NCBI GenBank assembly: GCA_965112735.1
Contig: OZ218956.1
Span: forward strand, 2,542,001-2,606,000
Length of the DNA: 64,000 bases
Source of the DNA: Phaeosaccion multiseriatum
Lineage: Eukaryota; Protista; Ochrophyta, other classes
Direction: 5' to 3'
The notes under the pieces are model-generated. The model did not search any database, was not told the origin of the DNA, and saw nothing but the letters and a program-made list of their open reading frames with translations. The first letter of the stretch is position 1. The number at the start of each line of letters is the position of its first letter. Position numbers and translations under genes: made by a program. Shown here in pieces: positions 28,967 to 44,044 of this stretch.

Positions 28967-31418
28967 CTGGAGAGGGAACAGAGGGAGCCAAGCAATCAAC
29001 TACTTCGTCGAATATTCCGCAAGCGGTGGCTGTATAGGAAGGGCTTCTCCGTCCATCACCTCCTTCTGTACTTCTCTTCACATCCACCTGCTTTCCACCT
29101 TCCCTCTCCAATTGAAGAGGAGCGATACCCTCTCAACTCGACGACCTAGTCCTTTGTTTTCCATCTGCCAAATATCCTCCCTCCCTCGCCTCCCTCGCTT
29201 CTCTCAGTCATATCGGGCGACTTCTCGGGCAGAAGGGGCGCACGAGGAGGGTATTTGGAGCGTGGCTTGGACTAGCAGAGGGAGCGTATTGTCAGGGTCG
29301 GTGGATGAGAGAGCGAGAGTATGGTGAGAGCAATAGTGACTCCCTTCCTCTCTCTTTCCCTCCATCTCGCCTCTCTCCCTCTCTTCCTCCCTCCCTGTCT
29401 CTATTCTCCCTTTTGGTGGTCGCCTTTGTATTCTCTCAGACCTCGGTGGACCCCTTATCCTCTTCCCTAGGCTCATTTGCTGTCTCTTCCCTCCTCCTTC
29501 TCCTTCTCCTTTCCCCATCGCTCCATCCCCCCCTTAGGAATGACGAGCTGAGTCCCAGCAACTCACTGGGGGGTCACCGGTTGGGAGTGGTTAGCATCAA
29601 GCCCACCTCAGACGGAAACACAGCAGTTACCAGCTCGCTCGACAGTTCTCTGCGCTTTTGGGACTTGAATTCGGGCACACAAACAGGCATCATTGAAGCG
29701 GGACCAGGTTCGTGTACTCCATCCCGTCCATTGATGCGTCACTCATCACCCACCGACCCACTCACTCACTCAATCAATCAGCTCACCCATCCACCCACTC
29801 ACCCACCCAGCCTCCTACCCACTCCCTTACTCAGCTCACGCACCCACCCAATGCTATACCCCCATACCTCCATCAATCTCTCCATCCCTCCCTCTACCCA
29901 TACCCACCCACACACCCACCCAGTGGAGGCTTGGACAGTGGATGTGAGCCCTGATGACAAGCTGCTCGCCGCGGGCACTCAGCGGGGGTCAGTCAACGTG
30001 TGGAGTATGCAGAGCAAAGAGAAGGTGGCCAGCTTAGAGACCAGAGACAAGTTCTTGCTGAGTGTGGCCTTTAGCCCCAACGGAAAGAGGATAGCCTCGG
30101 GAGGTGAGTGAGTGAGTGAGTGAGTGAGTGTGTGAGTGAGTGAGTGAGTGCGTGCGTGAGTGAGTGAGTGAGTGAGTGAGTGGTGAGTTAGTGTGTGAGT
30201 GATGGAGAGGTCGAGGTGGCCGATCAACGTGACAGATGTGTACGTCTAGTAACAGGTTCGATTGGCGCCTCAGCTTGGTCTTACGCCCTCCTCCTCCTCC
30301 TCCTCCTGCTCCTCATCCTCCTCCTCTTCTCCCTCCTCCTCCTCCTCTCCCTCCTCCTCCCCCCCCTCCTCCTCCCTCCCTTGTACACAGGTTTGGATGG
30401 CCTGGTGAACATCTTCGACGTTGAGAACCAAAAGCTCGCTGCAAAGCTTGAGGGACACGCTATGCCCATCCGGAGCCTCTGCTTCTCTCCCGACGGCTCC
30501 CTGCTCTTCACTGCCTCGGATGATATGCGAGTGCATGTCTATGACGTGTGAGTTTCAGTGTTCTCCCCCGATTCAGTTTCATAGGTTACGTTTTCCCTTC
30601 CCCTTTGCTTTGTAGTTTGCTCACTCTGCTGCTCACCTCCGCCCCTCCCTGTGTTCCTGCACCATCTTTGCTCCTCATCTACTGCCATGTACTGTCATCT
30701 GGTGCTCCTTCTGCTGCTGCTGGTGGCGGTCCTTCAGAAAACGGAATAGCGTGGTGGCGTCCTTCACAGGACATACCTCCCTAGTGCTCAGTGTGGCGTG
30801 TAGTCCAGATGGGAAGCATTTCGCATCGAGGTGAGGGAGAGAGAGGGAGGGAGAGAGGCAAGAGCGCAGGGGGAGAGAGAGAGACAGAAGAGCAGACGAG
30901 TATACACTTCTGATCGCATCACTCCTGCATCTCCTTTAGTGTCTGTCCTGCGCAGTGCCTCTCTGTGGCATCCAATCATGCATCCCGTCTCCTCTGTGCC
31001 GGTGTGGGTGTGTGTGCGTTCCGTCTTGTTCATCTGGACTCTCTCTCTCTGTCTCTCTCTCGCACTCTCTTGTCTTGTCTCTATTCCAATCGATCACTCA
31101 GCGGTAGCGACAAGACTGTGAAGGTATGGGACCTCGCAGGAAAGCAATGTGTGCACACCTTTGACAGCGCACACACAGATCAGGTACGAAACAAGAGAGA
31201 GAGAGAGCTAAAGGGAGCGTGACTGGCTCTTGTGGCTGCCTGGCCTCTGGATCCACCTTAACCCTGCAACACGTCCTAATCCACTTCCATGCACTGCCAT
31301 CCACTGCTATCCCCCGTCTCCGCAGGTGTGGAGCGTGGCCTATAATGCCACCGGCGATAAGCTCGTGTCGGGCGGGGACGATGGCACCCTACAGATGTAT
31401 GCCATTGGAACCGTGTAG
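28917..31418 (+). CDS. WDR61: WD40-repeat protein WDR61/SKI8
   Basis: ATG-only first coding exon, then [72 protein letters not shown]. All exons splice in frame. Confidence 0.92.
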
Positions 31419-31670: not shown

Positions 31671-31962
31671 CTAGGACATGGCGAAGGCGTCCGACGGACT
31701 TCCCATGCCCAATTCATCGGCAACGATACTGAGAAGCTTCACACTTGCCGCCCTGCCCTTGACGAGCTTATTGCACAGGAGCGACAGCACCACTCCGCTC
31801 TCGGGGTGTGCAATCACAAGGCTGCCGCCCATACCCACATGACCGAAGCCCGATAGAGCGCTCGTGCGCCCTTCTTCCCCTCCTCCTGCCACTCCTCCTC
31901 CTCCTCCCAGTCCTCCTCCTCTTTGGCTTGATCCTTCACTGCTCCTTCGCGTGCTGCCGCTC

Positions 31963-31999
<37 letters not shown>

Positions 32000-33845
32000 T
32001 CCTGCTGTTCACACTTCTACGGAGGCCAATGTTGCTAATCCCTCGGTACTCTGAACTGGCACCGCCGCCGATACCGGTGGTGGTGGTGGTGGTGGCGCTG
32101 GTGGTGGAGGAAAGAGACGCGACGCTGCCCCCCTCGCGTTGCGCTTGTTGCTGCTCCTGTTTGTGAAAGCCGAAGAGTTGAAAGCCGAGACCGTAGCGTA
32201 CCTCGTGGGGCAGACCTTCGGGGTAGAGAGAGGGAGAGGGAAAGGGAGAGGATAGGCAGAGAGAAAGAGACAGAGAAGAGGGGGAGAGGGAGAGAGGGAG
32301 AGAGGGAGAGAGGGAGAGAGAGAGAGAGAGACAGGGATTGTTGGAGATTGAGAGAGACGGAGAGGCAGGGAGGGGGAGTGAGCCAAGAAAAATAGAAAGA
32401 ATGTGAAGAAGATCACACAATCTAATCAGAGCAGAGAGGTATATACGGCAGAGGTATACATGGCAGAGGTATATATGGCAGAGGTACATGGGTAGAGCAC
32501 ATAGGTATATATGGCAGAGGTACATGGGTAGAGCACATAGGTATATATGGCAGAGGTACATGGGTAGAGCACATAGGTATATATGGCAGAGGTACATGGG
32601 TAGAGCACAGAGGTATATATGGCAGAGGTACATGGGTACAGCACAGAGGTATATATGGCAGAGGTACATGGGTACAGCACAGAGGTATATATGGCAGAGA
32701 TACATGGGTACAGCACAGAGGTATATATGGCAGAGGTAAATGGGTACAGCACAGAGGTATATATGGCAGAGATACATGGGTACAGCACAGAGGTATATAT
32801 GGCAGAGGTACATGGGTAGAGCACAGAGGTATATATGGCAGAGATACATGGGTACAGCATAGAGGTATATATGGCAGAGGTATATATGGCAGAGATACAT
32901 GGGTACAGCACAGAGGTATATATGGCAGAGGTACATGGGTAGAGCACAGAGGTATATATGGCAGAGGTACATGGGTACAGCACAGAGGTATATATGGCAG
33001 AGGTACATGGGTACAGCACAGAGGTATATATGGCAGAGATACATGGGTACAGCACAGAGGTATATATGGCAGAGGTAAATGGGTAGAGCACAGAGGTATA
33101 TATGGCAGAGGTATATATGGCAGAGATACATGGGTACAGCACAGAGGTATATATGGCAGAGATACATGGGTACAGCACAGAGGTATATATGGCAGAGGTA
33201 AATGGGTACAGCACAGAGGTATATATGGCAGAGATACATGGGTACAGCATAGAGGTATATATGGCAGAGATACATGGGTACAGCACAGAGGTATATATGG
33301 CAGAGGTACATGGGTAGAGCACAGAGGTATATATGGCAGAGGTATATATGGCAGAGATACATGGGTACAGCACAGAGGTATATATGGCAGAGATACATGG
33401 GTACAGCACAGAGGCATATATGGCAGAGGTACATGGGTACAGCACAGAGGTATATATGGCAGAGGTACATGGGTAGAGCACAGAGGTATATATGGCAGAG
33501 GTACATGGGTACAGCACAGAGGTATATATGGCAGAGGTACATGGGTAGAGCACAGAGGTATGTACGGCAGAGGTATATGGGTACAGCACAGAGGTACATA
33601 TGGCAGAGGTACATGGGTACAGCACAGAGGTATATATGGCAGAGGTATATGGGTAGAGCACAGAGGTCTAAATGGCAGAGGTATATGGGTAGAGCAGACA
33701 AGAGCAGATTGTGATACAGAGCAGACGTGTGACGTACCGAAGAGGTGAAGCAGGGCGCTCGTGTCTGTAGCGGCGTGCTCTACTGCGCCCAGCATCGCTT
33801 CTCTGGGAAGGAGCTTGCCCGCACTGCCGCCGCTGCTGCCGCTAT

Positions 33846-33879
<34 letters not shown>

Positions 33880-34073
33880 GCTGCTGCTGCTGGTGCTATT
33901 ACTACTGCTGCCCCTACTGCCGTTGCTGTTCCTGCTGCTGCTGGTGCCTCGCTTGACTCGGTCAGAGCCCCCCAGCGACGCGAGTAAGTCGTCGAAAAGA
34001 ACCGCGAGGCCTCGGGCCGTGAAGTGACCGTTGGCAGCAGGGATGGTGGCGCTCCTTCTCGGCACAAGGACCG

Positions 34074-34127
<54 letters not shown>

Positions 34128-34157
34128 CAGAGAGAGAGAGATAGAGACAGAGAGAGA

Positions 34158-34211
<54 letters not shown>

Positions 34212-35802
34212 GATAGAGATAGAGAGAGAAAGAGATAGAGAGAGGGGATGAGAGTGCGGCAGGGGAAGAGGGAGAGGCCAGGAGAGGACAAGAGAGGGAA
34301 GTGAGCGGCGGGGATGAGGGGTAAAGGACGGAAGGGTTCTGCGATGCAGCTACTCCTACGCTTGGCTTCGCTTGCATGTGGGCCAGGAGAAGAGGAGAAG
34401 AATAAGGCAGCAAGAGATGATCGGATTGGGGCCCGTACCTGAGCTCGTGCGAATTGAACACGCGAGGGTCGAGGAAGTACTCCCTACCGCGGAGCTTGAC
34501 GGCAAGCTCTCCGATGGCGGCGCCTTCCACAGGGTCGTACTCGGACACGGCCTTTGCAATCATGCCCACCACTCCTCCCCCTTTGCGTCCATGGAAGGAG
34601 GTAAGTAGGGAGAGGGGCGGGAGACAAGGAAAAGAGGGAGGGAGGGAGGGAGGTGGGTAGGGTGTGTGTTCATAGGTAGGTAGGTAAGTAGGTAGGAGGG
34701 TAGGGAGGTGGGCTAGGTGGGAGGCAGGTGGGTGGGTAGGTAGGTACGTGGGTAGATGTGTAGACACCATTGGCGCACGTCGTGTTGACGCTACAAAGGG
34801 GCAGGTTGAGCACCACACCACAGGGGTTGGTCACAACCCAGGCTCGCTCACAGGTTAGGTGTCGAACACTGGTGTCAGGAAGACATACATACACTTCCAC
34901 CCCACCCCCCCCCCCCCCCGCGAAGCTTGACTCAAGTGAGCACCCACCCACCTTCCTCCTCGTCGATGCTGTCCCCTAGCCCCTGCCCCTGCCCCTCGCT
35001 GCTCTCCGTCATATCCTTGAGGAAGCTGTGCTCCATGGAGGCAAGCCTGCTCTCGGGTTCACCCTGAGTTGGGCATTTAGCGGAGTAGCGCAAGGGGAAA
35101 TGGATGGGACGACACATAACATTACATAACACTAGTATGTAAATGTATATGCGGGGGATAGGGAGCGGGGGTCTTGAGTCGGGGGAAGGGAGGGCGGAGA
35201 GGAGCGGAGAGCTCTCCTGCTCCCTCCCCCTTCTTCTCTTCCTCCTCCCCTCTCTCTCTCTCACCTTCAATCCTGCTCCGCAAAACACCTCCTTTTCAAT
35301 CCCGAGCGGCTCCAAAATCTCCTTCTTCACAAAGGCCGAGAAGGTCTCTCCAGTGGTCTTCTCTACCACAGCCCCTGCCAGCCATCCAAAGGAGAAGTAG
35401 TGGTAGGCTGTTCGACTCCCTGGTGCCCACACGGGCGTTGCCTCTTCCATCACCTTGAGCATGCCTGGAAGAAAGCGAGGGAGAGAAGGATGGATGGATG
35501 GCAGTCGATGGTCAGCGAGGAGCACCCCCACACTTTGACAGTCCACATCAAGCACTCTCACACACACGCACACACACGTTCAGTTTCTTGGTGATTCCTA
35601 TTAAGTCAATAAAGCACACTTTAATCTCATCACTCTCTTATCATACCTGCCCAATCGCACACGGCCTCGAAGTTGGCCTCGGTAGGGAAGGCGTGCTGCA
35701 GCCCGGTGCTGTGCGTGAGGATGTGTCTCACGGTTGTCGTGTGCTTCAGGTTGTGGCTGGTGTTGCTCTTTTCGCTGTTGTTGCTGTTGTCACTGTTGCT
35801 AG

Positions 35803-35837
<35 letters not shown>

Positions 35838-37286
35838 GTGGTGGTGGTGGTGTTGGTGGTACTGCTGCTGCAAGGCTTGGCGAAGTTAGGCCAAATGGTG
35901 ACAAGGGGAGTATCTGTACAGTCAGGGGTCAGGGTCAGAGGTCAGGGGTCAGGGTCAGGACCAGGAATATACACACACACACCGCTACCACACACACACA
36001 CACACACTCGTCCACCCACTCCTCCCCACCCCCATTCGCCCACCCACTGACTTACTACCCACCCAATGACATACTACCCGCCCACTGACTTACTATACCC
36101 ACCCACCATAAGAGATGCGACCGCTGTGCACGAGTCTGTGAATGGCCGTGGCAGCGAGGGCCTTGGTGATACTGAGGCCGCAGAAGAGGGTGCGAGGGGA
36201 GACGGGGCGGGGGTCCACTCTCCCCTGTGTGCCCCCACTTGTGTGAACAAGCATACGTCCGTGCTGCATCACACACACCTGCATGCATGTGTGTGTATAT
36301 ATATACGCATTTAATCATGTGTGGATGGTCATTGGATGGTCAGGGATGGTCATGGATGGTCTCGGATGGTCATTGGGTGGTCATGGATGGTCATGGATGG
36401 TAATGGGATGGTCGTGGATGGTCATGGATGGTCACGGTGGTCATGGGATGGTCGTGGATGGTCATGGATGGTCATGGATGGTCGTGGATGGTCATGGATG
36501 GTCATGGATGGTCGTGGATGGTCATGGAGAGTGCATTGGTGTCCGGTGTCAATTGTGTCAGACCGAGAGGAGAGGGGAGGAAAGGAGATGGATCGACTGA
36601 TAACCCGACGCAGCCCCCATCCAGACCGTAACCGTAAGTATCTTCCTCCCTTCCCTATATGCCTCTACGTATCTACCTTTGCCCTCCCTTACGTATTCTT
36701 TATACCTGTATGCCTCTAATCTGCCCTTCCTTCACAAGCTCCTCGACGGTCCTCCTCACCCGGGCCTCAAGGCGCGAGAGGCAGGGGGAGGGGTAAATCA
36801 CAGCCTTGGCTCGCTCTGACAAGGGCACTCGGTCAATCAGGGCCCGTTCAGCGAACGGTGCCATGAGGGCGAGGTAGGGTGTCTTGACGCCCAACCTGGC
36901 TCACCACAGGAAGGGAGGAAGGGGGGGGGGGGGGCAGGGAAGGTAGAATGTGGGGTCTGGGTCTTTCCTATGTGTACATATCGCTCCCGTTTCGTCTCCT
37001 TTTCCCCACCTCAACCAACCCAACGTCGAACCTCCTATATTCAGAACCCTCTTGACTGAAGCTGAAACTCTGCTCCTCCCTCCCTCCCTCCCTCCCTCCC
37101 TCCCTCCCTCCCTCCCTCCCTCCCTCCCTCCCTCCCTGCCTGCCTGCCTACCTGCCTGTCTCCCTTACCTACTCCCCAGGCCGTGCAGCAGCTCTGTGGC
37201 TCGGAGGAAGAAAACGACGTCTCCAGGGAAGGCGTCGATTGGATTTCGAGGCTTTACCTTACCGTCCGCTGGAAGGGTAATAGTGT

Positions 37287-37327
<41 letters not shown>

Positions 37328-37625
37328 TCAGTCAGAGAAGAAGGGGAGGGGAGAGGAAAGGAAATGAGAGGAGGGGAGGGGAGGGGAGGGGAGGGGAGAG
37401 GGGCGTTAAGGGACGGATGGCACTCTCCTCCCACGTCTTCCGCTAGGTCTTCCTCCCCTCCCTCCCCCCCCTCACTTTCCATACCTACCTGTCTTCTTCT
37501 TGAGAAAGGTCTTTCGCATATTCTTCCTGTGGTGTGCCCTGAACTCTCTGCGGCTCTCCTCCGCCGGAGCCGTGTCGCGCAGCGAAAAGCGAATGTTATT
37601 CATGTCCTGCAAAGGATCGAATCTG

Positions 37626-37697
<72 letters not shown>

Positions 37698-40600
37698 CTT
37701 TGTGACGTTCGTGGGCGGGGATAGCGAGCGTGGCCAGCGCTGATGGAGGCCGTATATTGGCAAACTCAGGGATAGTGAGCCGGGAAGCCACGCTGTTGTA
37801 CATGAACGTCACAAAGGCTTCGGCCCCCAGCACCTCTCGCCACTCCTCTGCTGCCGCCGAAGGTCATTGAATAAATACCCCCCTTCCCCTCCCTTCCCTC
37901 TCCTCCCCTCCCCCTCCCCTCCCCCTCCCTCCTCCCCCTACCTGTTGAGCTTGATACCCATGCTCTCGAAGGCCTGAAGCATGAGGCAAATGTCCATCTC
38001 GAAAGCCGAGTACACAAACAGACTAAAGGCGATGCGCAGCTCCTCCGAAAGCCTCTTGGCTAGACCCCAGTCGAGCAGCACAGGGCGGCATCTCCACACC
38101 TCATCCTCCTCTTCCTCCTCCTCTTCCTCCTCCTCCTCTTCGTCCTCCTCTTCCTCCTCTGCCTCCTTCCTCTCCTCGCCCCCTTCCCATCTCTTCTTGT
38201 CGCTCTTTCTCCGTCCCACCATTGGCGCTCCTCCTCCTCCTCCTCCTCCTCCTCCTCCTCCTCCTCCTCCTCCTTCTCCTCCTCCTCCCCCTCCTTCTCC
38301 TCCTCCTCCTCCTCCTCCTCCCCCTTCTCTTCCTTCTTCTCCTCCTCCTGCTGCTGCTACCGCTAATGATGCCCGCCCCCTCTTCTCCTGGACAAAAATG
38401 TTCCCTGGGTGTGGATCCGCATTGAAGAGTCCGTCGATGTGTATTTGATAAGCGAAGCTTTCGCACACCTTACGCATTACCTCCTCTCTGTCCAGACCTC
38501 TGAGGCTCCCCACTCCCTCCGTGTCGGTCACCTTCACGCCCTCACAAAAGGTCATGACGAGGAGGCGTTCGGTGGTGAATCCCTCTACTAAGGTCGGGAT
38601 CTGTGGAAAGAGAGTAAAGGAAGAAAGGGAGAGGGGGAGGGGGAGGGGGGGGGAAGGGAGGGAGGGAGGTGGGTGGGTGGGGAGGAGGGTGGATCCAGAG
38701 CTCGACCTTTATACTTATATACGTACATACATACAAACATGCAAACGTACATACGTACATACATACATACATACAGACATAGATACATACATACATATAT
38801 ACATACATCGAAGTACATAATACATACATACATACATACATACATACGTACATACATACATACATACATACATACATACATACATACATACATACATACC
38901 TGCACGTCCAGGCCCGCCTCTCCCATGGCTCTCTGCACCCTCACCAGGTTAGCGGCCTCCTGCCATCGGATGCCATCCGAGGGGAGTGAAAGTTTCAGTT
39001 TGCATATTTAGGCTTCGTGTCGACATTGGGGTGATGGGATCAATGAGATTGGTCAACATCGAATTGGACTGAAGTGAGCTGAACTGATCCCCTCAATCTA
39101 CAAAAAAACTGAACTAAAGCAAAGTGAAGTGAAGTGAAATGAAGTGACCACCCCCATACCTACCTGGTGAAAGTCGAGCTCCTTCCGCGTCTCCTTGTAC
39201 CACTCGTCCATAATAGGAGAGAAGTCGAACTGCCTGTCCGCCCATGCCACGAGCCGCACGATCAGTCGGAGATTGGCCAAGTCACCCGTCAGAAGCTCGC
39301 GCACCTGTGTCACGTGTGTGTGTGTGTACGTATTGTGTGTGTGAGTGTTTGCGTGTGTGTGCATTTGTATATGTGTGCGTGTGTGCGTGTAATGAAGCGG
39401 GAGGGGGGCAGCCAGCCTGACTTTCCAGTTTCAGTGCGCTTCTTAATCTGTCTCTCCCTCCCTCACACACACGCTCTCCCCCTCCCAGTCTCACCTGCGG
39501 ATGCTGTATCTTGACAACCACCTTCTCCCCTCCGTGGCCGTGTTGGTGATCGTCATGCAGCGTCGCCAAATGTATCTGTGCGATGGATGCGGAAGCCAAC
39601 GCTTCATGCTCAATGCTCTTAAAGAGTTTGTCCACAGGTTGTCCAAGCTCCTTCTCAATCAAGTCCTTCATCTGTTTGGGTCACACACATACCCAATAGG
39701 CCGCAAATTCATTGTGAAGAAAGGAGGGGACACACGGAGGGAGGGAGTGAGGGGGAGGAAGGAGAGGGAGGGGTGGATGGAGGAAGGAAAGAGAGCAAGG
39801 AGAGAAAGGAGAGGGAGGGGTGGATGGAGGAAGGAGAGAGAGGAAGGAGAGGAAGGAGAGGGAGGGGTGGACGGAGGAAGGAAAGAGAGCAAGGAGAGGA
39901 AGGAGAGGGAGGAAAGGGGAAAAGGAGAGGAAGGAGAAGGACAGGCAGGAGAAGGAGAAGGGGACGGAGAGGGAGGAACGGGAAGAAGGAGAGGAAGGAG
40001 AAGGAGGGGACGGAGGAAGAGAAAAGGAGAAGAAGGAGATAGAGGAGAAGAAGGTGAGATGAGGATGGCGATGAACGATGTGCAGGACTAGAGAGAGAGG
40101 GAGAGAGAACAAATGGATCAGACGGGAGAGATAGAGAAGAGAGAGAGAAAGACACACAGAGAGAAAGACAGAGACTGAGAGACTGCGAAGAGGCACACAC
40201 ACACACACACGCACCTGGTCCCACGGGCTGGCCTTGATCATATCCTGCAGCTTCTGAAGCTCGTGCGTGAAGGTAGGGGGCATGACATCGGCCCTGCTTC
40301 CCAGAAACTGACCCACCTTCACCCACAGGCCCTTGAGCTGCAGGATGGCCTGAGAGAAGGAGGAGGGAGGGAGGGAAGGAGGGAGGGAGGGAGGGAGGGA
40401 GGGAGGGAGGGAGTGAGGAAGAGAGGGAGAGAGGGAGAGGGAGAGAGGGGAGAGAGTGGGTAAATGAGAGAAACTGAAACTGAAGCACGTACAACTGCAC
40501 CTCTCCGTACATGTGCAGTACCTGATAGATGAAGGCGGCCATAAAGCGCTGAACGAAGTCCCATAGGGCATCGGTCTCCTCACGGCACATGCCGCGGCTG

Positions 40601-41029
40601 TACACACGAGTGCCTGTGTGTGTATGTACGTACGTACGTATGTAAAGTAGATATGTAGATAAGAGCGGGTGGAGGGGAGAGGGGAGAGAGAGGGAGGGCG
40701 CGAGAGAGATGAGGGGGGTTAGAGACAGAGGAAGAGAGTGAGGTGCTTGTAATAGAGAGAGGAGTGAAGACAGAACCCCCCCCCCCTCCTTCTCCTCCCC
40801 CTCCCCCTCCGGCACCACCCACTGCCCTCCACCGACAGTCACCTGTCCATCCTCTCACTCACCCTTCATAATAGCCACGACGGTGCCTGCAAGTAGACAT
40901 GTGTAAAGCTTGCGTAGGGCCGACCCTCGTGTGACTCTATGATATCCCCCGGCCAACCCCATTCCACCCAATATAATGCCCCAATACGCCAGGCCGGCCG
41001 CCCCTCCCCACCAATGTGGTGACACATAA

Positions 41030-41105
<76 letters not shown>

Positions 41106-41675
41106 GCGACGACATGTAGGCGGAACACATGGACTCGGCTTCTAGCCCCGCCTCGTCGAGTTTCAACATCCTGCCCCATTGCCGCCACCGAGCGAGGGAG
41201 GGAGGGGGAAGAGGGGTGGAGGAAGGGAGAGACAGAGAGAGCCAATACATTCCAGCTGAGAGGGTGCCGATGAGAGCAGCCCGCACAGAGGACAAGGAGG
41301 GGAGAAGAGGAGTAGAGGAAAACGTAGGCCCACACAGACCAAAGCATCGCGGGCCGACAGCAGAAGGCCGACAGGACGCCTCAAAAGACCGCCTTCTTAG
41401 TCCTCCCTCTGGCATGATACTGACACGCTGTCTCAATATCCTCTCTCCTTTCCCTCATCTCTTTGTCTTACTGACGCTCCCCTCTCCTCTGCCCTCAAAG
41501 CCTGTTTCCGCGTCTCACCTCCGCTTGACTGTGATGGCCAGCACATGTAAGACGAGTAGCCCTGCCAGCAGGGCCCCCGTCACCAGCATGTAGTACACCA
41601 CGCTCAACAGATGGCGCAGAGCGGCGGCACGGGCGGTGAAATCCATGCTTCGCGTCTTGTCCACCTCGGACTTTT

Positions 41676-41707
<32 letters not shown>

Positions 41708-42580
41708 GAGAGAGCAGGGAGAGAGGAGTGAGAGAGAAAAGAGAGTGGGGGGTGGACAGACAGAAGGAGATGTGAGAGACAGCCAGAGAGAGACAGGGGG
41801 AGACAAGGGGGGAAGAGAGAGAGAGAGACAGGGAGAAAAGGGAGGGAGAGAGAGAGCGCGCGAGATGTGATTGGTTTCGGAAGAGGTCAATACTGAGACT
41901 GAAACGCACCTGTAGTTGCCCGACCTTGCTTCGCAACATGTCCAGCTCCGCGTCGACGTTTTCCATCGAAGTAACAACACCCTCTGAAGGGCCGATGAGA
42001 GCCCTTCTAGCCCCACCATCCGCAGCAGCACCACCACCAGCAGCACCACCACCAGCAGCAACACCGCCTCGCATGGCTAGCTCTTGTCCTTGATCACCCT
42101 CATATATCCGCTGTCCTGGTCGGAAGGGTTCGATGTTTCTTCCTTCCCGCCAGGAGGAGGAGGAAGTGGCCTTGGGAGTAGAGGACGTAAGGGTGGTGAT
42201 GGAGAGCCGCCGCTTCACACGCGCCAAGATGGACTCTCCTTCTTCTTCCTCTTCTTGTTCCCCACCCCGCCCCAAAACTGCCCCGTTCATCGTGGCCATA
42301 CTCCTACTATTGCTGCTGATGTTGCTACTGCTACCATTTCCTGCGCTGGCTCCGTATCGGTAGGCCCTGTCGCAGCGGTCGCATGCCCGCTCCCCTTCTA
42401 CCTTCCTTTGGGAGCAATCGTCGCACACACATATGCCGCAGATCCTAAGGGGATGCAAGGGGGGAAAGGGTGGGATGGGAAGTATGTGGGTGGAGGGGAG
42501 TTGATGAGCGCAAGGGAAAAGAGAAGGATGGACGGCACCTGACGAATGGACGGACGTATAGGTGGACAGACAGACAGACT

Positions 42581-42667
<87 letters not shown>

Positions 42668-43607
42668 GGACAGACAGACAGACGGGCGGACAGGAAGCGA
42701 TCTTCTTTACCGTACAAATCGTAACACCCCTTCTGTCTCCTGTCTCCACCCCCTGCCGCCATCAACTAAATTCTGCTCCTCTACACATCTTGTCGTGCCG
42801 ATGACTGACTGACCTGCAGTGATGTCTTCTGCGGTACAGCTTGAAGGGAGCTCCGCACTGAGTGCATTCACGGACGCTGTCGTCAGGCTGCCACTCAGCC
42901 TGTCGGAGCCTTCCGCCATGCCTTGCGTGCCTCGCGGGTGCGAGCAGGCGGCCGGTGTCGCCTCCCGTCTCCCCTTCCGTCCTCCCCTTCCCCCCTCCTC
43001 CTGCTCCTCCCTCCGAGGCCGCTTTGAACCACCTCCCGAGCGCCTTGGATAGGGCAATGTCTCCCTTGAAGTGGAGCTTGCCCGTGACCACAGCTGTGCG
43101 GGGATTCATGCGCCTGAATGAATGAATGTCATGGGTGAGTGTGAGTGTGCGTGTGCGGGTGTGATGTGTGTAAGAGACAGCCATGATTAAGAGACGACCC
43201 AAACAGTAGCGCTGAGCTTAGGACACCGATGGAATAGATTATACTAAGCCTAATGCAAGCCTGTACCGTCGGGTCGGCCTCAGGCAGGCTACGGGAGACG
43301 GGAGATAGAGAAAACTCTCTCTGACTCACTCTCACCTCGACGCCAAATCCAGGAACACCGTCGCGCTGCTATAGGACAGTTCGAGATCCACCGCAGCCAC
43401 CTCCGCCGGGGTAGCTCCGCCGTAGTCGTAGCAGTGAAGGAGGCCCTCAGAGAGGAGGTAGGTGCCGCATTCTCGGACGTTAAAGAGCACGATGGGTTGG
43501 GGTGCCGAGGCGCCTCCATGCTGCTGCTGCTCCTGCCTTTGTCTCTCGTCTCCCGCGACGGACGCTACCTCCTCCAGAAACGCACGGATCTTCTCTCCGC
43601 TGGGCAT
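31671..43607 (-). CDS. Multidomain SCP2 - FYVE - 2-3 TM - ABC1/UbiB atypical kinase - serine beta-lactamase-fold hydrolase
   Basis: 21 exons with matching phases from ATG 43607 to TAG 31671. SCP2: MNPRTAVVTGKLHFKGD. FYVE: WQPD, RRHHCR, 8 Cys. ABC1: KVGQ, ASASIAQ, VVKIQ, ELDF, ADPHPGN, LDWG. Beta-lactamase fold: SITK, LTHSTG, YHYFSFG, PAANG, FGHVG. Confidence 0.9.
32430..33700. repeat. 36-bp minisatellite, about 35 copies, in the last intron of the ABC1/beta-lactamase gene
   Basis: Unit GGCAGAGGTACATGGGTACAGCACAGAGGTATATAT with an occasional extra 15-bp sub-unit. Flanked by donor G|GTACGT (about 33738) and acceptor GAAG| (about 32217). Confidence 0.95.
36323..36528. repeat. 10-bp minisatellite (GGATGGTCRT)n, intronic
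   Basis: About 20 copies read directly. Confidence 0.9.
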
Positions 43608-43744
43608 CTTATGTCTCCCTTTCTTTTTTCCTTTCGTTTCTGTTTGCTGCGATATCCTGCCGCCGATTCAGCCACTTTACTTTTAATCTCTGATCAAAGA
43701 TTGCTAGGAATGAGACGAAGGGGGATTGTAAGAGAGGCAGCGGG

Positions 43745-44044
43745 ATGAGCCGACTGGCATCAAGGGCAGCAGCTGCAGCGGCAGCACCGCTGCTTCCACT
43801 TCCCAGGCAAGGAGGGCATGCTGCGCGAACCCTCCTCGCCGTGCGCCACTTCTCTGCTCTCAAGGGAGGGCTGAAGAGCCGGAAGCGCCAACGAGCAGAG
43901 CAGCCTCAGCAGGCGGTGATACGCGCAGGGCTGGGGGTGGGCTTCAACAAGGGGACGCAGCAAAGAAGACGGGCTTCCGGGATGGCCGTGAGAGAGGCAG
44001 TGCAGGGAGAGCACGACGAAGGCAGTGGACATAGCAGCGATGGC

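Follow-up and report, generated by a model that had tools for sequence, protein, structure and literature searches.

UbiB/ABC1 proteins are ancient, linked to disease and poorly understood. Members such as Escherichia coli UbiB, yeast Coq8, Cqd1 and Cqd2 (Mcp2), and human COQ8A/B and ADCK1/2/5 are stand-alone domains active in bacteria or inside mitochondria, with hydrophobic helices as membrane anchors; their ATPase motifs are needed for the part they play in handling quinones or lipids. UbiB has been proposed to extract ubiquinone (UQ) precursors from the membrane, an activity dependent on its ATPase function; the yeast proteins Cqd1 and Cqd2 control the distribution of coenzyme Q (CoQ), and Mcp2 (the same protein as Cqd2) shows a genetic interaction with the lipase Tgl2. 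In the ubiE-ubiJ-ubiB cluster of E. coli, ubiJ lies directly upstream of ubiB with a 4-nt overlap, and the SCP2 domain of its product has been proposed to bind the polyprenyl tail. A fused form is found in plants, where At5g24810 of Arabidopsis and LOC_Os06g48770 of rice carry an ABC1/UbiB domain and then a serine beta-lactamase-fold domain in one chain and are catalogued as S12 serine peptidases (PMC1560137). We describe here a gene that adds to such a core in the alga Phaeosaccion multiseriatum; it lies within a stretch of 64,000 nucleotides, hereafter the window (assembly GCA_965112735.1, contig OZ218956.1, positions 2,542,001 to 2,606,000), and positions below are those of the window.

The locus holds a single gene, whose product is a membrane protein of about 1,670 residues with the order SCP2-FYVE-linker-two helices-ABC1-hydrolase. 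With UbiB proteins it shares the ABC1 fold, the KxGQ motif, the A-rich loop, the Lys, DxHxGN and the D-x-G Mg-binding motif, and with the plant proteins, as had been noted when the locus was first annotated, the combination of ABC1 with a beta-lactamase fold. The plant proteins differ in being without an SCP2 or phosphoinositide-binding module and in being predicted mitochondrial; they are likewise uncharacterised. The order SCP2 then UbiB is that of ubiJ and ubiB, which, in contrast, encode separate polypeptides without a phosphoinositide finger and without an esterase. The comparison suggests that what is new here is a module combining a lipid carrier and a membrane address, set on the known ABC1-S12 core. 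Our preferred reading, to which we give a probability of about 0.6, is that this single gene encodes a phosphoinositide-addressed, membrane-anchored machine that would extract a lipid (UbiB), process it (esterase) and carry it (SCP2).

The DNA of the window is eukaryotic and about 57% G+C; it has numerous short exons and introns rich in repeats. We rebuilt the gene without the model of the first-pass annotation: stop-free blocks were anchored by Pfam and tblastn matches to relatives, and all frame-keeping GT/GC-AG pairs were enumerated. The result is a minus-strand gene of 21 exons running from an ATG at 43607-43605 to a stop codon at 31673-31671 (Table 1), with a coding sum of 5,010 nt, that is 1,670 codons (plus stop), no stop inside the exons and a final phase of 0. 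Each junction has a frame-keeping GT-AG solution, mostly with a strong CAG^GT(A/G)AG donor (the caret marks the end of the exon) and a pyrimidine-rich CAG acceptor, the weakest calls being the acceptors of E16 (35913) and E19 (34580). Between the two flanking plus-strand genes the coding signal is on the minus strand only; the gene is single copy in this genome, and the best protein matches of its product are from Phaeothamnion, Chattonella and Pylaiella. The earlier claim of one continuous 21-exon frame with intact signatures is thus reproduced by an independent rebuild and by motifs read at verified coordinates. One has to keep in mind that Pfam searches were run exon by exon, on unjoined exons, and that the structure prediction was made on the Chattonella orthologue and not on the window protein.

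Whether the locus holds one gene or two merged neighbours was a more delicate matter. Helix 1 is followed by a TGA in frame, and an ATG stands at the head of the next coding block, so the same DNA could be read as a tail-anchored SCP2-FYVE-coiled-coil protein ending in "...AITVKRR*" (stop at 41518), followed by a separate gene for the helix-ABC1-beta-lactamase part starting at the ATG at 41169. We hold this to be extremely unlikely. The TGA sits within a consensus donor, AG^GTGAGA, and the donor of exon 1 shows the same feature, so that the TGA after exon 4 simply comes with phase-2 donors of this kind; an acceptor that keeps the frame, preceded by a pyrimidine tract, is present at 41170; and a 3' untranslated region (UTR), a promoter and a 5' UTR would have to fit into only about 350 bp. 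A tail anchor in "...AITVKRR*" was itself ruled out as a candidate, its stop belonging to the donor consensus as at exon 1.

Relatives speak for the single gene as well. Transcript-derived orthologues pass through both helices into ABC1 within one open reading frame (ORF). A protein from the Chattonella subsalsa MMETSP transcriptome (P0151, 1,270 aa) is placed by tblastn collinearly on the window, from 43160 to 31683; two mRNA-sized JGI contigs (4.1 kb each) have one ORF with SCP2, FYVE, ABC1 and Beta-lactamase; and choanoflagellate transcript ORFs marked complete have the same layout. The Pylaiella littoralis gene model (P0219, 1,542 aa) extends from SCP2 through the hydrolase, the flanks of its helices 1 and 2 resembling those of the window, and many relatives of 1,200-1,650 residues have ABC1 at about 450-800, SCP2 and/or FYVE before it and Beta-lactamase after it. 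The one-chain claim was borne out by this shared domain order. As a side observation, both phase-2 donors AG^GTGAG (43336/43335 and 41519/41518) place an in-frame TGA immediately past the exon; retention of either intron would cut the protein off right there, leaving, in the case of exon 4, a tail-anchor-like SCP2-FYVE product.

Table 1. Exons and features of the fusion gene (window positions).
Feature	Positions	Strand	Content or basis
E1	43607-43336	-	N-terminal half of SCP2-like domain; start codon 43607-43605
E2	43113-42814	-	SCP2-like C-terminal part, then FYVE first half
E3	42444-41910	-	FYVE second half, then linker
E4	41670-41519	-	holds hydrophobic helix 1
E5	41170-40863	-	exon of the 21-exon model; acceptor at 41170
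E6	40613-40522	-	UbiB/ABC1 region begins
E7	40349-40215	-	UbiB/ABC1 region
E8	39671-39495	-	ABC1: A-rich loop and Lys
E9	39304-39164	-	UbiB/ABC1 region
E10	38959-38900	-	UbiB/ABC1 region
E11	38600-37942	-	end of UbiB/ABC1 region
E12	37622-37489	-	ABC1-hydrolase linker
E13	37268-37169	-	ABC1-hydrolase linker
E14	36895-36706	-	ABC1-hydrolase linker
E15	36278-36107	-	hydrolase domain begins
E16	35913-35647	-	hydrolase; Ser/Thr/Asn-rich insert
E17	35464-35265	-	hydrolase
E18	35063-34952	-	hydrolase
E19	34580-34439	-	hydrolase
E20	34057-33738	-	hydrolase; Ser/Thr/Asn-rich insert
E21	32215-31674	-	hydrolase; Ser/Thr/Asn-rich insert
SCP2-like domain, N-terminal half (exon 1)	43336-43607	-	hhalign to family profile, orthologue hidden Markov model (HMM) positions 28-54
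SCP2-like domain, C-terminal part RMNPRTAVVTGKLHFKGDIALSKALGRW (start of exon 2)	43029-43113	-	Pfam SCP2 and hhalign
FYVE first half (EWQPDD...CTQC...RRRHHC), end of exon 2	42814-42896	-	Pfam and family HMM
FYVE second half ICGICVCDDCSQRKVEGERACDRC, start of exon 3	42363-42444	-	family HMM; tblastn to P0151
Low-complexity linker ending in a short helical/coiled-coil-like stretch VDAELDMLRSKVGQLQ	41910-42362	-	translation
Hydrophobic helix 1 LLSVVYYMLVTGALLAGLLVLHVLAI (exon 4)	41533-41610	-	translation; counterparts in P0151 and Pylaiella P0219
Exon 4 donor CGGAG^GTGAGA	41519-41525	-	in-frame TGA right after, inside donor consensus, not the gene end
(TCA)n microsatellite, about 28 Ser/Pro residues, loop between helices	41029-41112	-	translation
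Hydrophobic helix 2 AAGLAYWGIILGGMGLAGGY, then basic HRVTRGSALRK	40942-41001	-	counterparts in P0151 and P0219
UbiB/ABC1 atypical kinase-like domain, exons 6-11	37942-40613	-	Pfam, family HMM, motifs
Conserved ABC1-hydrolase linker, exons 12-14 (RFDPLQDMNNIRF..., NPIDAFPGDVVFFLRATELLHGLG, KTPYLALMAPFAERAL...)	36706-37622	-	identity to relatives
Beta-lactamase-fold serine hydrolase, exons 15-21	31674-36278	-	Pfam, family HMM, motifs

The SCP2-like domain is interrupted by an intron, and its Pfam score was taken on single exons. Exon 2 matches SCP2 (PF02036) at 17.7 bits (E 0.0046, model positions 71-100 of 101), under the cut-off of 21.3, and aligns to the family profile by hhalign at 98.4%; exon 1 by itself has zero Pfam matches and aligns to the family N-terminal profile with 47% probability (E 2e-4), collinear with the SCP2 half in exon 2. 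Orthologues score above the Pfam threshold (P0002 38.6, P0018 34.6, P0114 25.3 and P0006 23.9 bits). An AlphaFold (AF2) model of residues 1-215 of the Chattonella protein P0151 has a mean predicted local distance difference test score (pLDDT) of 82.7; in the PDB it is matched best by SCP2 proteins (target-normalised TM-scores 0.62-0.70): human SCP2 (E 5e-6), SCP-2L, mosquito SCP2 with bound fatty acid, and UbiJ-SCP2, followed in rank by the FYVE proteins EEA1, endofin and Vps27. The SCP2 assignment of the first-pass annotation thus finds its support in the orthologues and in the exon order, the window itself giving a weak, sub-threshold signal.

The FYVE finger is easier to recognize: its first half alone reaches 36.1 bits with Pfam (PF01363, E 7.2e-9, cut-off 27.8) and 33.3 bits with the family HMM, and its second half 17.3 bits with the family FYVE HMM (model positions 30-53). 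The translation contains WQPD, RRRHHCR, RAC and four CxxC pairs (eight Cys); compared with EEA1, the stretch preceding RAC lacks about 6 residues, which is typical of the family. Judged by these motifs, the finger carries the complete signature for binding phosphatidylinositol 3-phosphate (PI3P), and such binding is predicted. In Pylaiella P0219, the corresponding region reads W-E-R-D...CGGCG with no RRHHCR afterwards, either from a small exon skipped in the annotation or from a real loss of the finger.

Between the finger and ABC1 come the linker, whose coiled-coil-like stretch has a positional counterpart in Chattonella (DILKQQVVELQDKVESL), and the two hydrophobic helices, whose positions and flanks are conserved in P0151 and Pylaiella P0219. 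The helix flanks are basic and the inter-helix loop is acidic, in the window as in Chattonella; for this reason, the two helices probably form a hairpin with both ends cytosolic, the cytosol being where a FYVE finger has to sit. The first-pass annotation saw the transmembrane helices as an addition to the ABC1 core, which they may not be, several relatives without the N-terminal module also bearing N-terminal hydrophobic anchors. A family-wide topology from hydropathy was tried and dropped, the scan being too crude and too variable.

The UbiB/ABC1 domain scores 63.8 and 67.9 bits on single exons with Pfam (PF03109, cut-off 22.9), and exons 8 to 11 tile the ABC1 family HMM in order over positions 15-243 of 245. 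Its translation contains KVGQ (40319-40308), ASASIAQ, VVVKIQ (with the Lys), KELDF, EAAN, DPHPGN (38417-38400) and DWG (38072-38064), the last also found in Chattonella; a 91-aa Gly/Glu-rich insert (38366-38094) separates the catalytic loop from DWG. The nucleotide-binding and catalytic motifs are intact, and ATPase or kinase activity is predicted from them. The linker of exons 12-14 is 52-74% identical to P0151 and P0001 and single copy in the genome.

The last domain matches Pfam Beta-lactamase (PF00144) at 47.7 and 45.8 bits (cut-off 27), and exons 15 to 21 tile the beta-lactamase family HMM over positions 9-364 of 366; as the exons tile nearly the full length of both HMMs in order, we take both the ABC1 and the hydrolase domains to be complete. 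By its sequence, the hydrolase is of the family VIII carboxylesterase type, with the S-x-x-K (SITK, 36173-36162), Tyr (YHY, 35405-35397) and H-x-G (HVG, 31841-31833) motifs kept. It shares with family VIII carboxylesterases (PDB 8j5v, 5gkv, 3zyt and 1ci8 EstB) the beta-lactamase fold, the S-x-x-K nucleophile and the Tyr, and these are its best sequence matches among solved structures; unlike them, small soluble bacterial enzymes, it has long low-complexity inserts and is fused to UbiB. Since PF00144 spans peptidases, amidases and esterases, and the plant relatives are catalogued as S12 serine peptidases (PMC1560137), one could also see a peptidase or amidase, in the manner of LACTB or DD-peptidases, or a non-catalytic binding module, with no hydrolysis of lipid esters. 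We regard this as very unlikely: the nearest solved sequences of the orthologue are the carboxylesterases 8j5v and 5gkv (E about 1e-27, against about 1e-9 for AmpC), some 18 orders of magnitude in E-value before class C beta-lactamases, E-values from which substrate preference cannot be read; the catalytic motifs are retained, and the fusion partners are lipid domains.

Microsatellite-coded inserts lie within several exons: poly-Ser (41029-41112), Gly/Glu-rich (38094-38366) and Ser/Thr/Asn-rich in parts of E16, E20 and E21. They account for the window protein being about 400 residues longer than its Chattonella orthologue.

How far the layout extends was assessed with the largest ABC1 exon, searched against 1.84 billion representative proteins; among the best 150 of 2,799 matches, which were those inspected, the N-terminal module is present in about 20 clusters at 50% identity. 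A word-based protein search with P0151, which is not a census, gave at least 19 proteins. Members are found in the stramenopiles Chattonella and Pylaiella (and, in part, Phaeothamnion), the haptophyte Chrysochromulina tobinii (labelled "ABC1 family protein"), the choanoflagellates Salpingoeca infusionum and Didymoeca costata, the ichthyosporean Chromosphaera perkinsii, Corallochytrium and the chytrid Batrachochytrium salamandrivorans. The window protein shares with them the domain order, the conserved ABC1-hydrolase linker and the hydrophobic helices between address domain and ABC1. An ESM Atlas feature search with the SCP2/FYVE exon returned no usable match. Apicomplexans and a red alga have shorter ABC1-hydrolase proteins that lack the module. 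As far as sequence comparison goes, the architecture is old, widespread and conserved across distant eukaryotes.

The layout is not special to this genome: members already sit in public protein sets of several eukaryotic supergroups, with precomputed Pfam domains and generic names ("aarF domain-containing kinase", "ABC1 family protein"). We found no description of it in the full-text literature with ABC1/UbiB/ADCK combined with FYVE, SCP2, beta-lactamase or lipid transfer; a Stentor kinome preprint does mention FYVE kinases, which belong to another family. As in the first-pass annotation, we found no functional characterisation of the architecture, and of the case envisaged against its novelty, that it be widespread and already characterised, only the first half was found, through the Pfam domains of the relatives.

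The position after SCP2 is where the members differ. It is filled by FYVE in most, by PX in P0006 and P0220-P0222, and by PH in P0059, P0102 and the chytrid. That three unrelated phosphoinositide-binding folds swap in one slot while the rest is kept is, in our view, the strongest computed evidence that the slot serves membrane addressing. In both choanoflagellates, a START domain is also inserted in the hydrolase domain; the insertion falls in the same general C-terminal part as the hydrolase inserts of the window protein.

A quick LG+G4 tree built on the shared core groups window exon 11 with P0151, P0114 and P0006 (Shimodaira-Hasegawa-like approximate likelihood ratio test, SH-aLRT, 97), a clade to which the PX form thus belongs, and it places the PH clade next to a FYVE clade as its sister (SH-aLRT 99). 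Long and short forms, the latter including relatives of the plant ABC1-S12 type, are interleaved in this tree, with 8 changes between module-bearing and module-less proteins. Several "short" proteins are truncated predictions; the 90% cluster of P0041, for example, includes P0210, a 1,258-aa SCP2-FYVE member. Given this interleaving and the many truncated predictions, we inferred neither a single origin nor an order of gains and losses.

Taken with the domains described above, these exchanges suggest how the protein might work. FYVE (PX or PH elsewhere) would hold or tether it at PI3P-marked endolysosomal or autophagic membranes; there, the UbiB ATPase would pull a hydrophobic lipid from the bilayer, in line with proposals for bacterial UbiB and COQ8; the esterase might cleave or transfer an acyl or ester group on the extracted lipid; and the SCP2 domain would shield or carry it. 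Our best guess for the cargo is an isoprenoid/quinone-type lipid or a neutral lipid ester. That the N-terminal module retargets the core to phosphoinositide membranes, an idea of the first-pass annotation, gains comparative support from FYVE, PX and PH sharing one slot across lineages, while lipid extraction and ester hydrolysis keep the standing they had, that of inference. The same design logic is known from anchored lipid-transfer proteins of membrane contact sites (GRAMD1/Aster, ORP5/8, Mdm1/Snx14), in each of which a single chain unites domains for lipid transfer and phosphoinositide binding with a transmembrane anchor. To our knowledge, they have no sequence relationship to the window protein, and none has a UbiB ATPase or an esterase.

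Several points weigh against our reading. No RNA run was found for this alga: the 4 runs available, all from one study, each contain 98% of the sampled words, introns included, and since intron words are present at that same level these runs are DNA, so that splicing at this locus is inferred. The SCP2 domain is below the Pfam threshold in the window (17.7 against 21.3 bits), with exon 1 at only 47% by hhalign. In a crude hydropathy scan, the predicted number of helices ranges from 1 to 4 or more among relatives, for which reason the topology is not settled. The SCP2 domain of the orthologue is closer to eukaryotic SCP2 than to UbiJ, which makes the UbiJ-UbiB parallel an analogy, with descent not shown; and for no family member did we find a measured activity, ligand or location. 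Lastly, some plant ABC1K proteins are reported as protein kinases (PMC8956952).

This last point leads to another reading, in which the ABC1 domain would phosphorylate proteins on PI3P membranes, with SCP2 as a regulatory lipid sensor. The kinase-like motifs are indeed intact, and AtABC1K6 is reported as a Mn2+-dependent protein kinase (PMC8956952). We nonetheless find a signalling kinase unlikely here, as the domain has the KxGQ motif that is typical of UbiB, fusion to two or three lipid-related domains (SCP2, the esterase, and START in some relatives) recurs, and the best-studied UbiB proteins work via ATPase activity on quinone lipids. By sequence, the ABC1 domain of the orthologue matches PDB 7cy2 and 5yjz (E about 5e-26) more closely than it matches COQ8A (E about 1e-13 to 1e-17), which indicates that the orthologue is not a COQ8 orthologue.

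The lipid machine that we prefer could be given a bolder form, which we offer tentatively and judge unlikely: an extramitochondrial UbiB machine at membrane contact sites. Its hairpin would sit in the endoplasmic reticulum or in an organelle outer membrane, and FYVE, PX or PH would grasp the phosphoinositide-marked endolysosomal or autophagic membrane opposite; UbiB would extract an isoprenoid quinone or related prenyl lipid, SCP2 (with START in choanoflagellates) would ferry it, and the esterase would release or trim an esterified storage form. Such a machine would go back to the ancestor of eukaryotes, and animals, yeasts and land plants would have lost it; if true, it would be a missing part of the distribution of CoQ-type lipids beyond their site of synthesis.

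The surroundings of the gene deserve a brief description. Intron 20 contains a 36-bp minisatellite (32464-33696) of about 34 copies over 1.23 kb, in which higher-order periods of 108 and 231 bp are also seen. All three minus-strand frames stay open across it, and this explains the spurious "ORFs" of 400-800 aa in the ORF list. Upstream, a divergent plus-strand neighbour starts at 43745, with 137 bp between its ATG and that of the fusion gene at 43607; it has an acidic N-terminus (weak TFIIA-like match), then an MMR_HSR1-type GTPase P-loop at about 44900. The gap at 43607-43745 is probably a compact bidirectional promoter. Downstream, a plus-strand WD40-repeat gene (29305-31418) is convergent, its last coding block ending about 250 bp from the stop codon of the fusion gene, and the 3' UTRs of the two genes may overlap.

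The leading idea about UbiB proteins, the ATP-driven removal of quinone lipids from membranes, rests on a few mitochondrial and bacterial cases. The family described here is a natural fusion of UbiB with a lipid carrier that has the fold of its bacterial partner UbiJ, with an esterase and with interchangeable phosphoinositide tags, to which choanoflagellates add a second lipid-transfer domain. It has probably been overlooked because it is missing from the usual model organisms. Such fusions predict a functional partnership and point to UbiB work on cytosol-facing membranes; the layout suggests that UbiB proteins, known mainly from the mitochondrial handling of coenzyme Q, also process or move lipids on other membranes.

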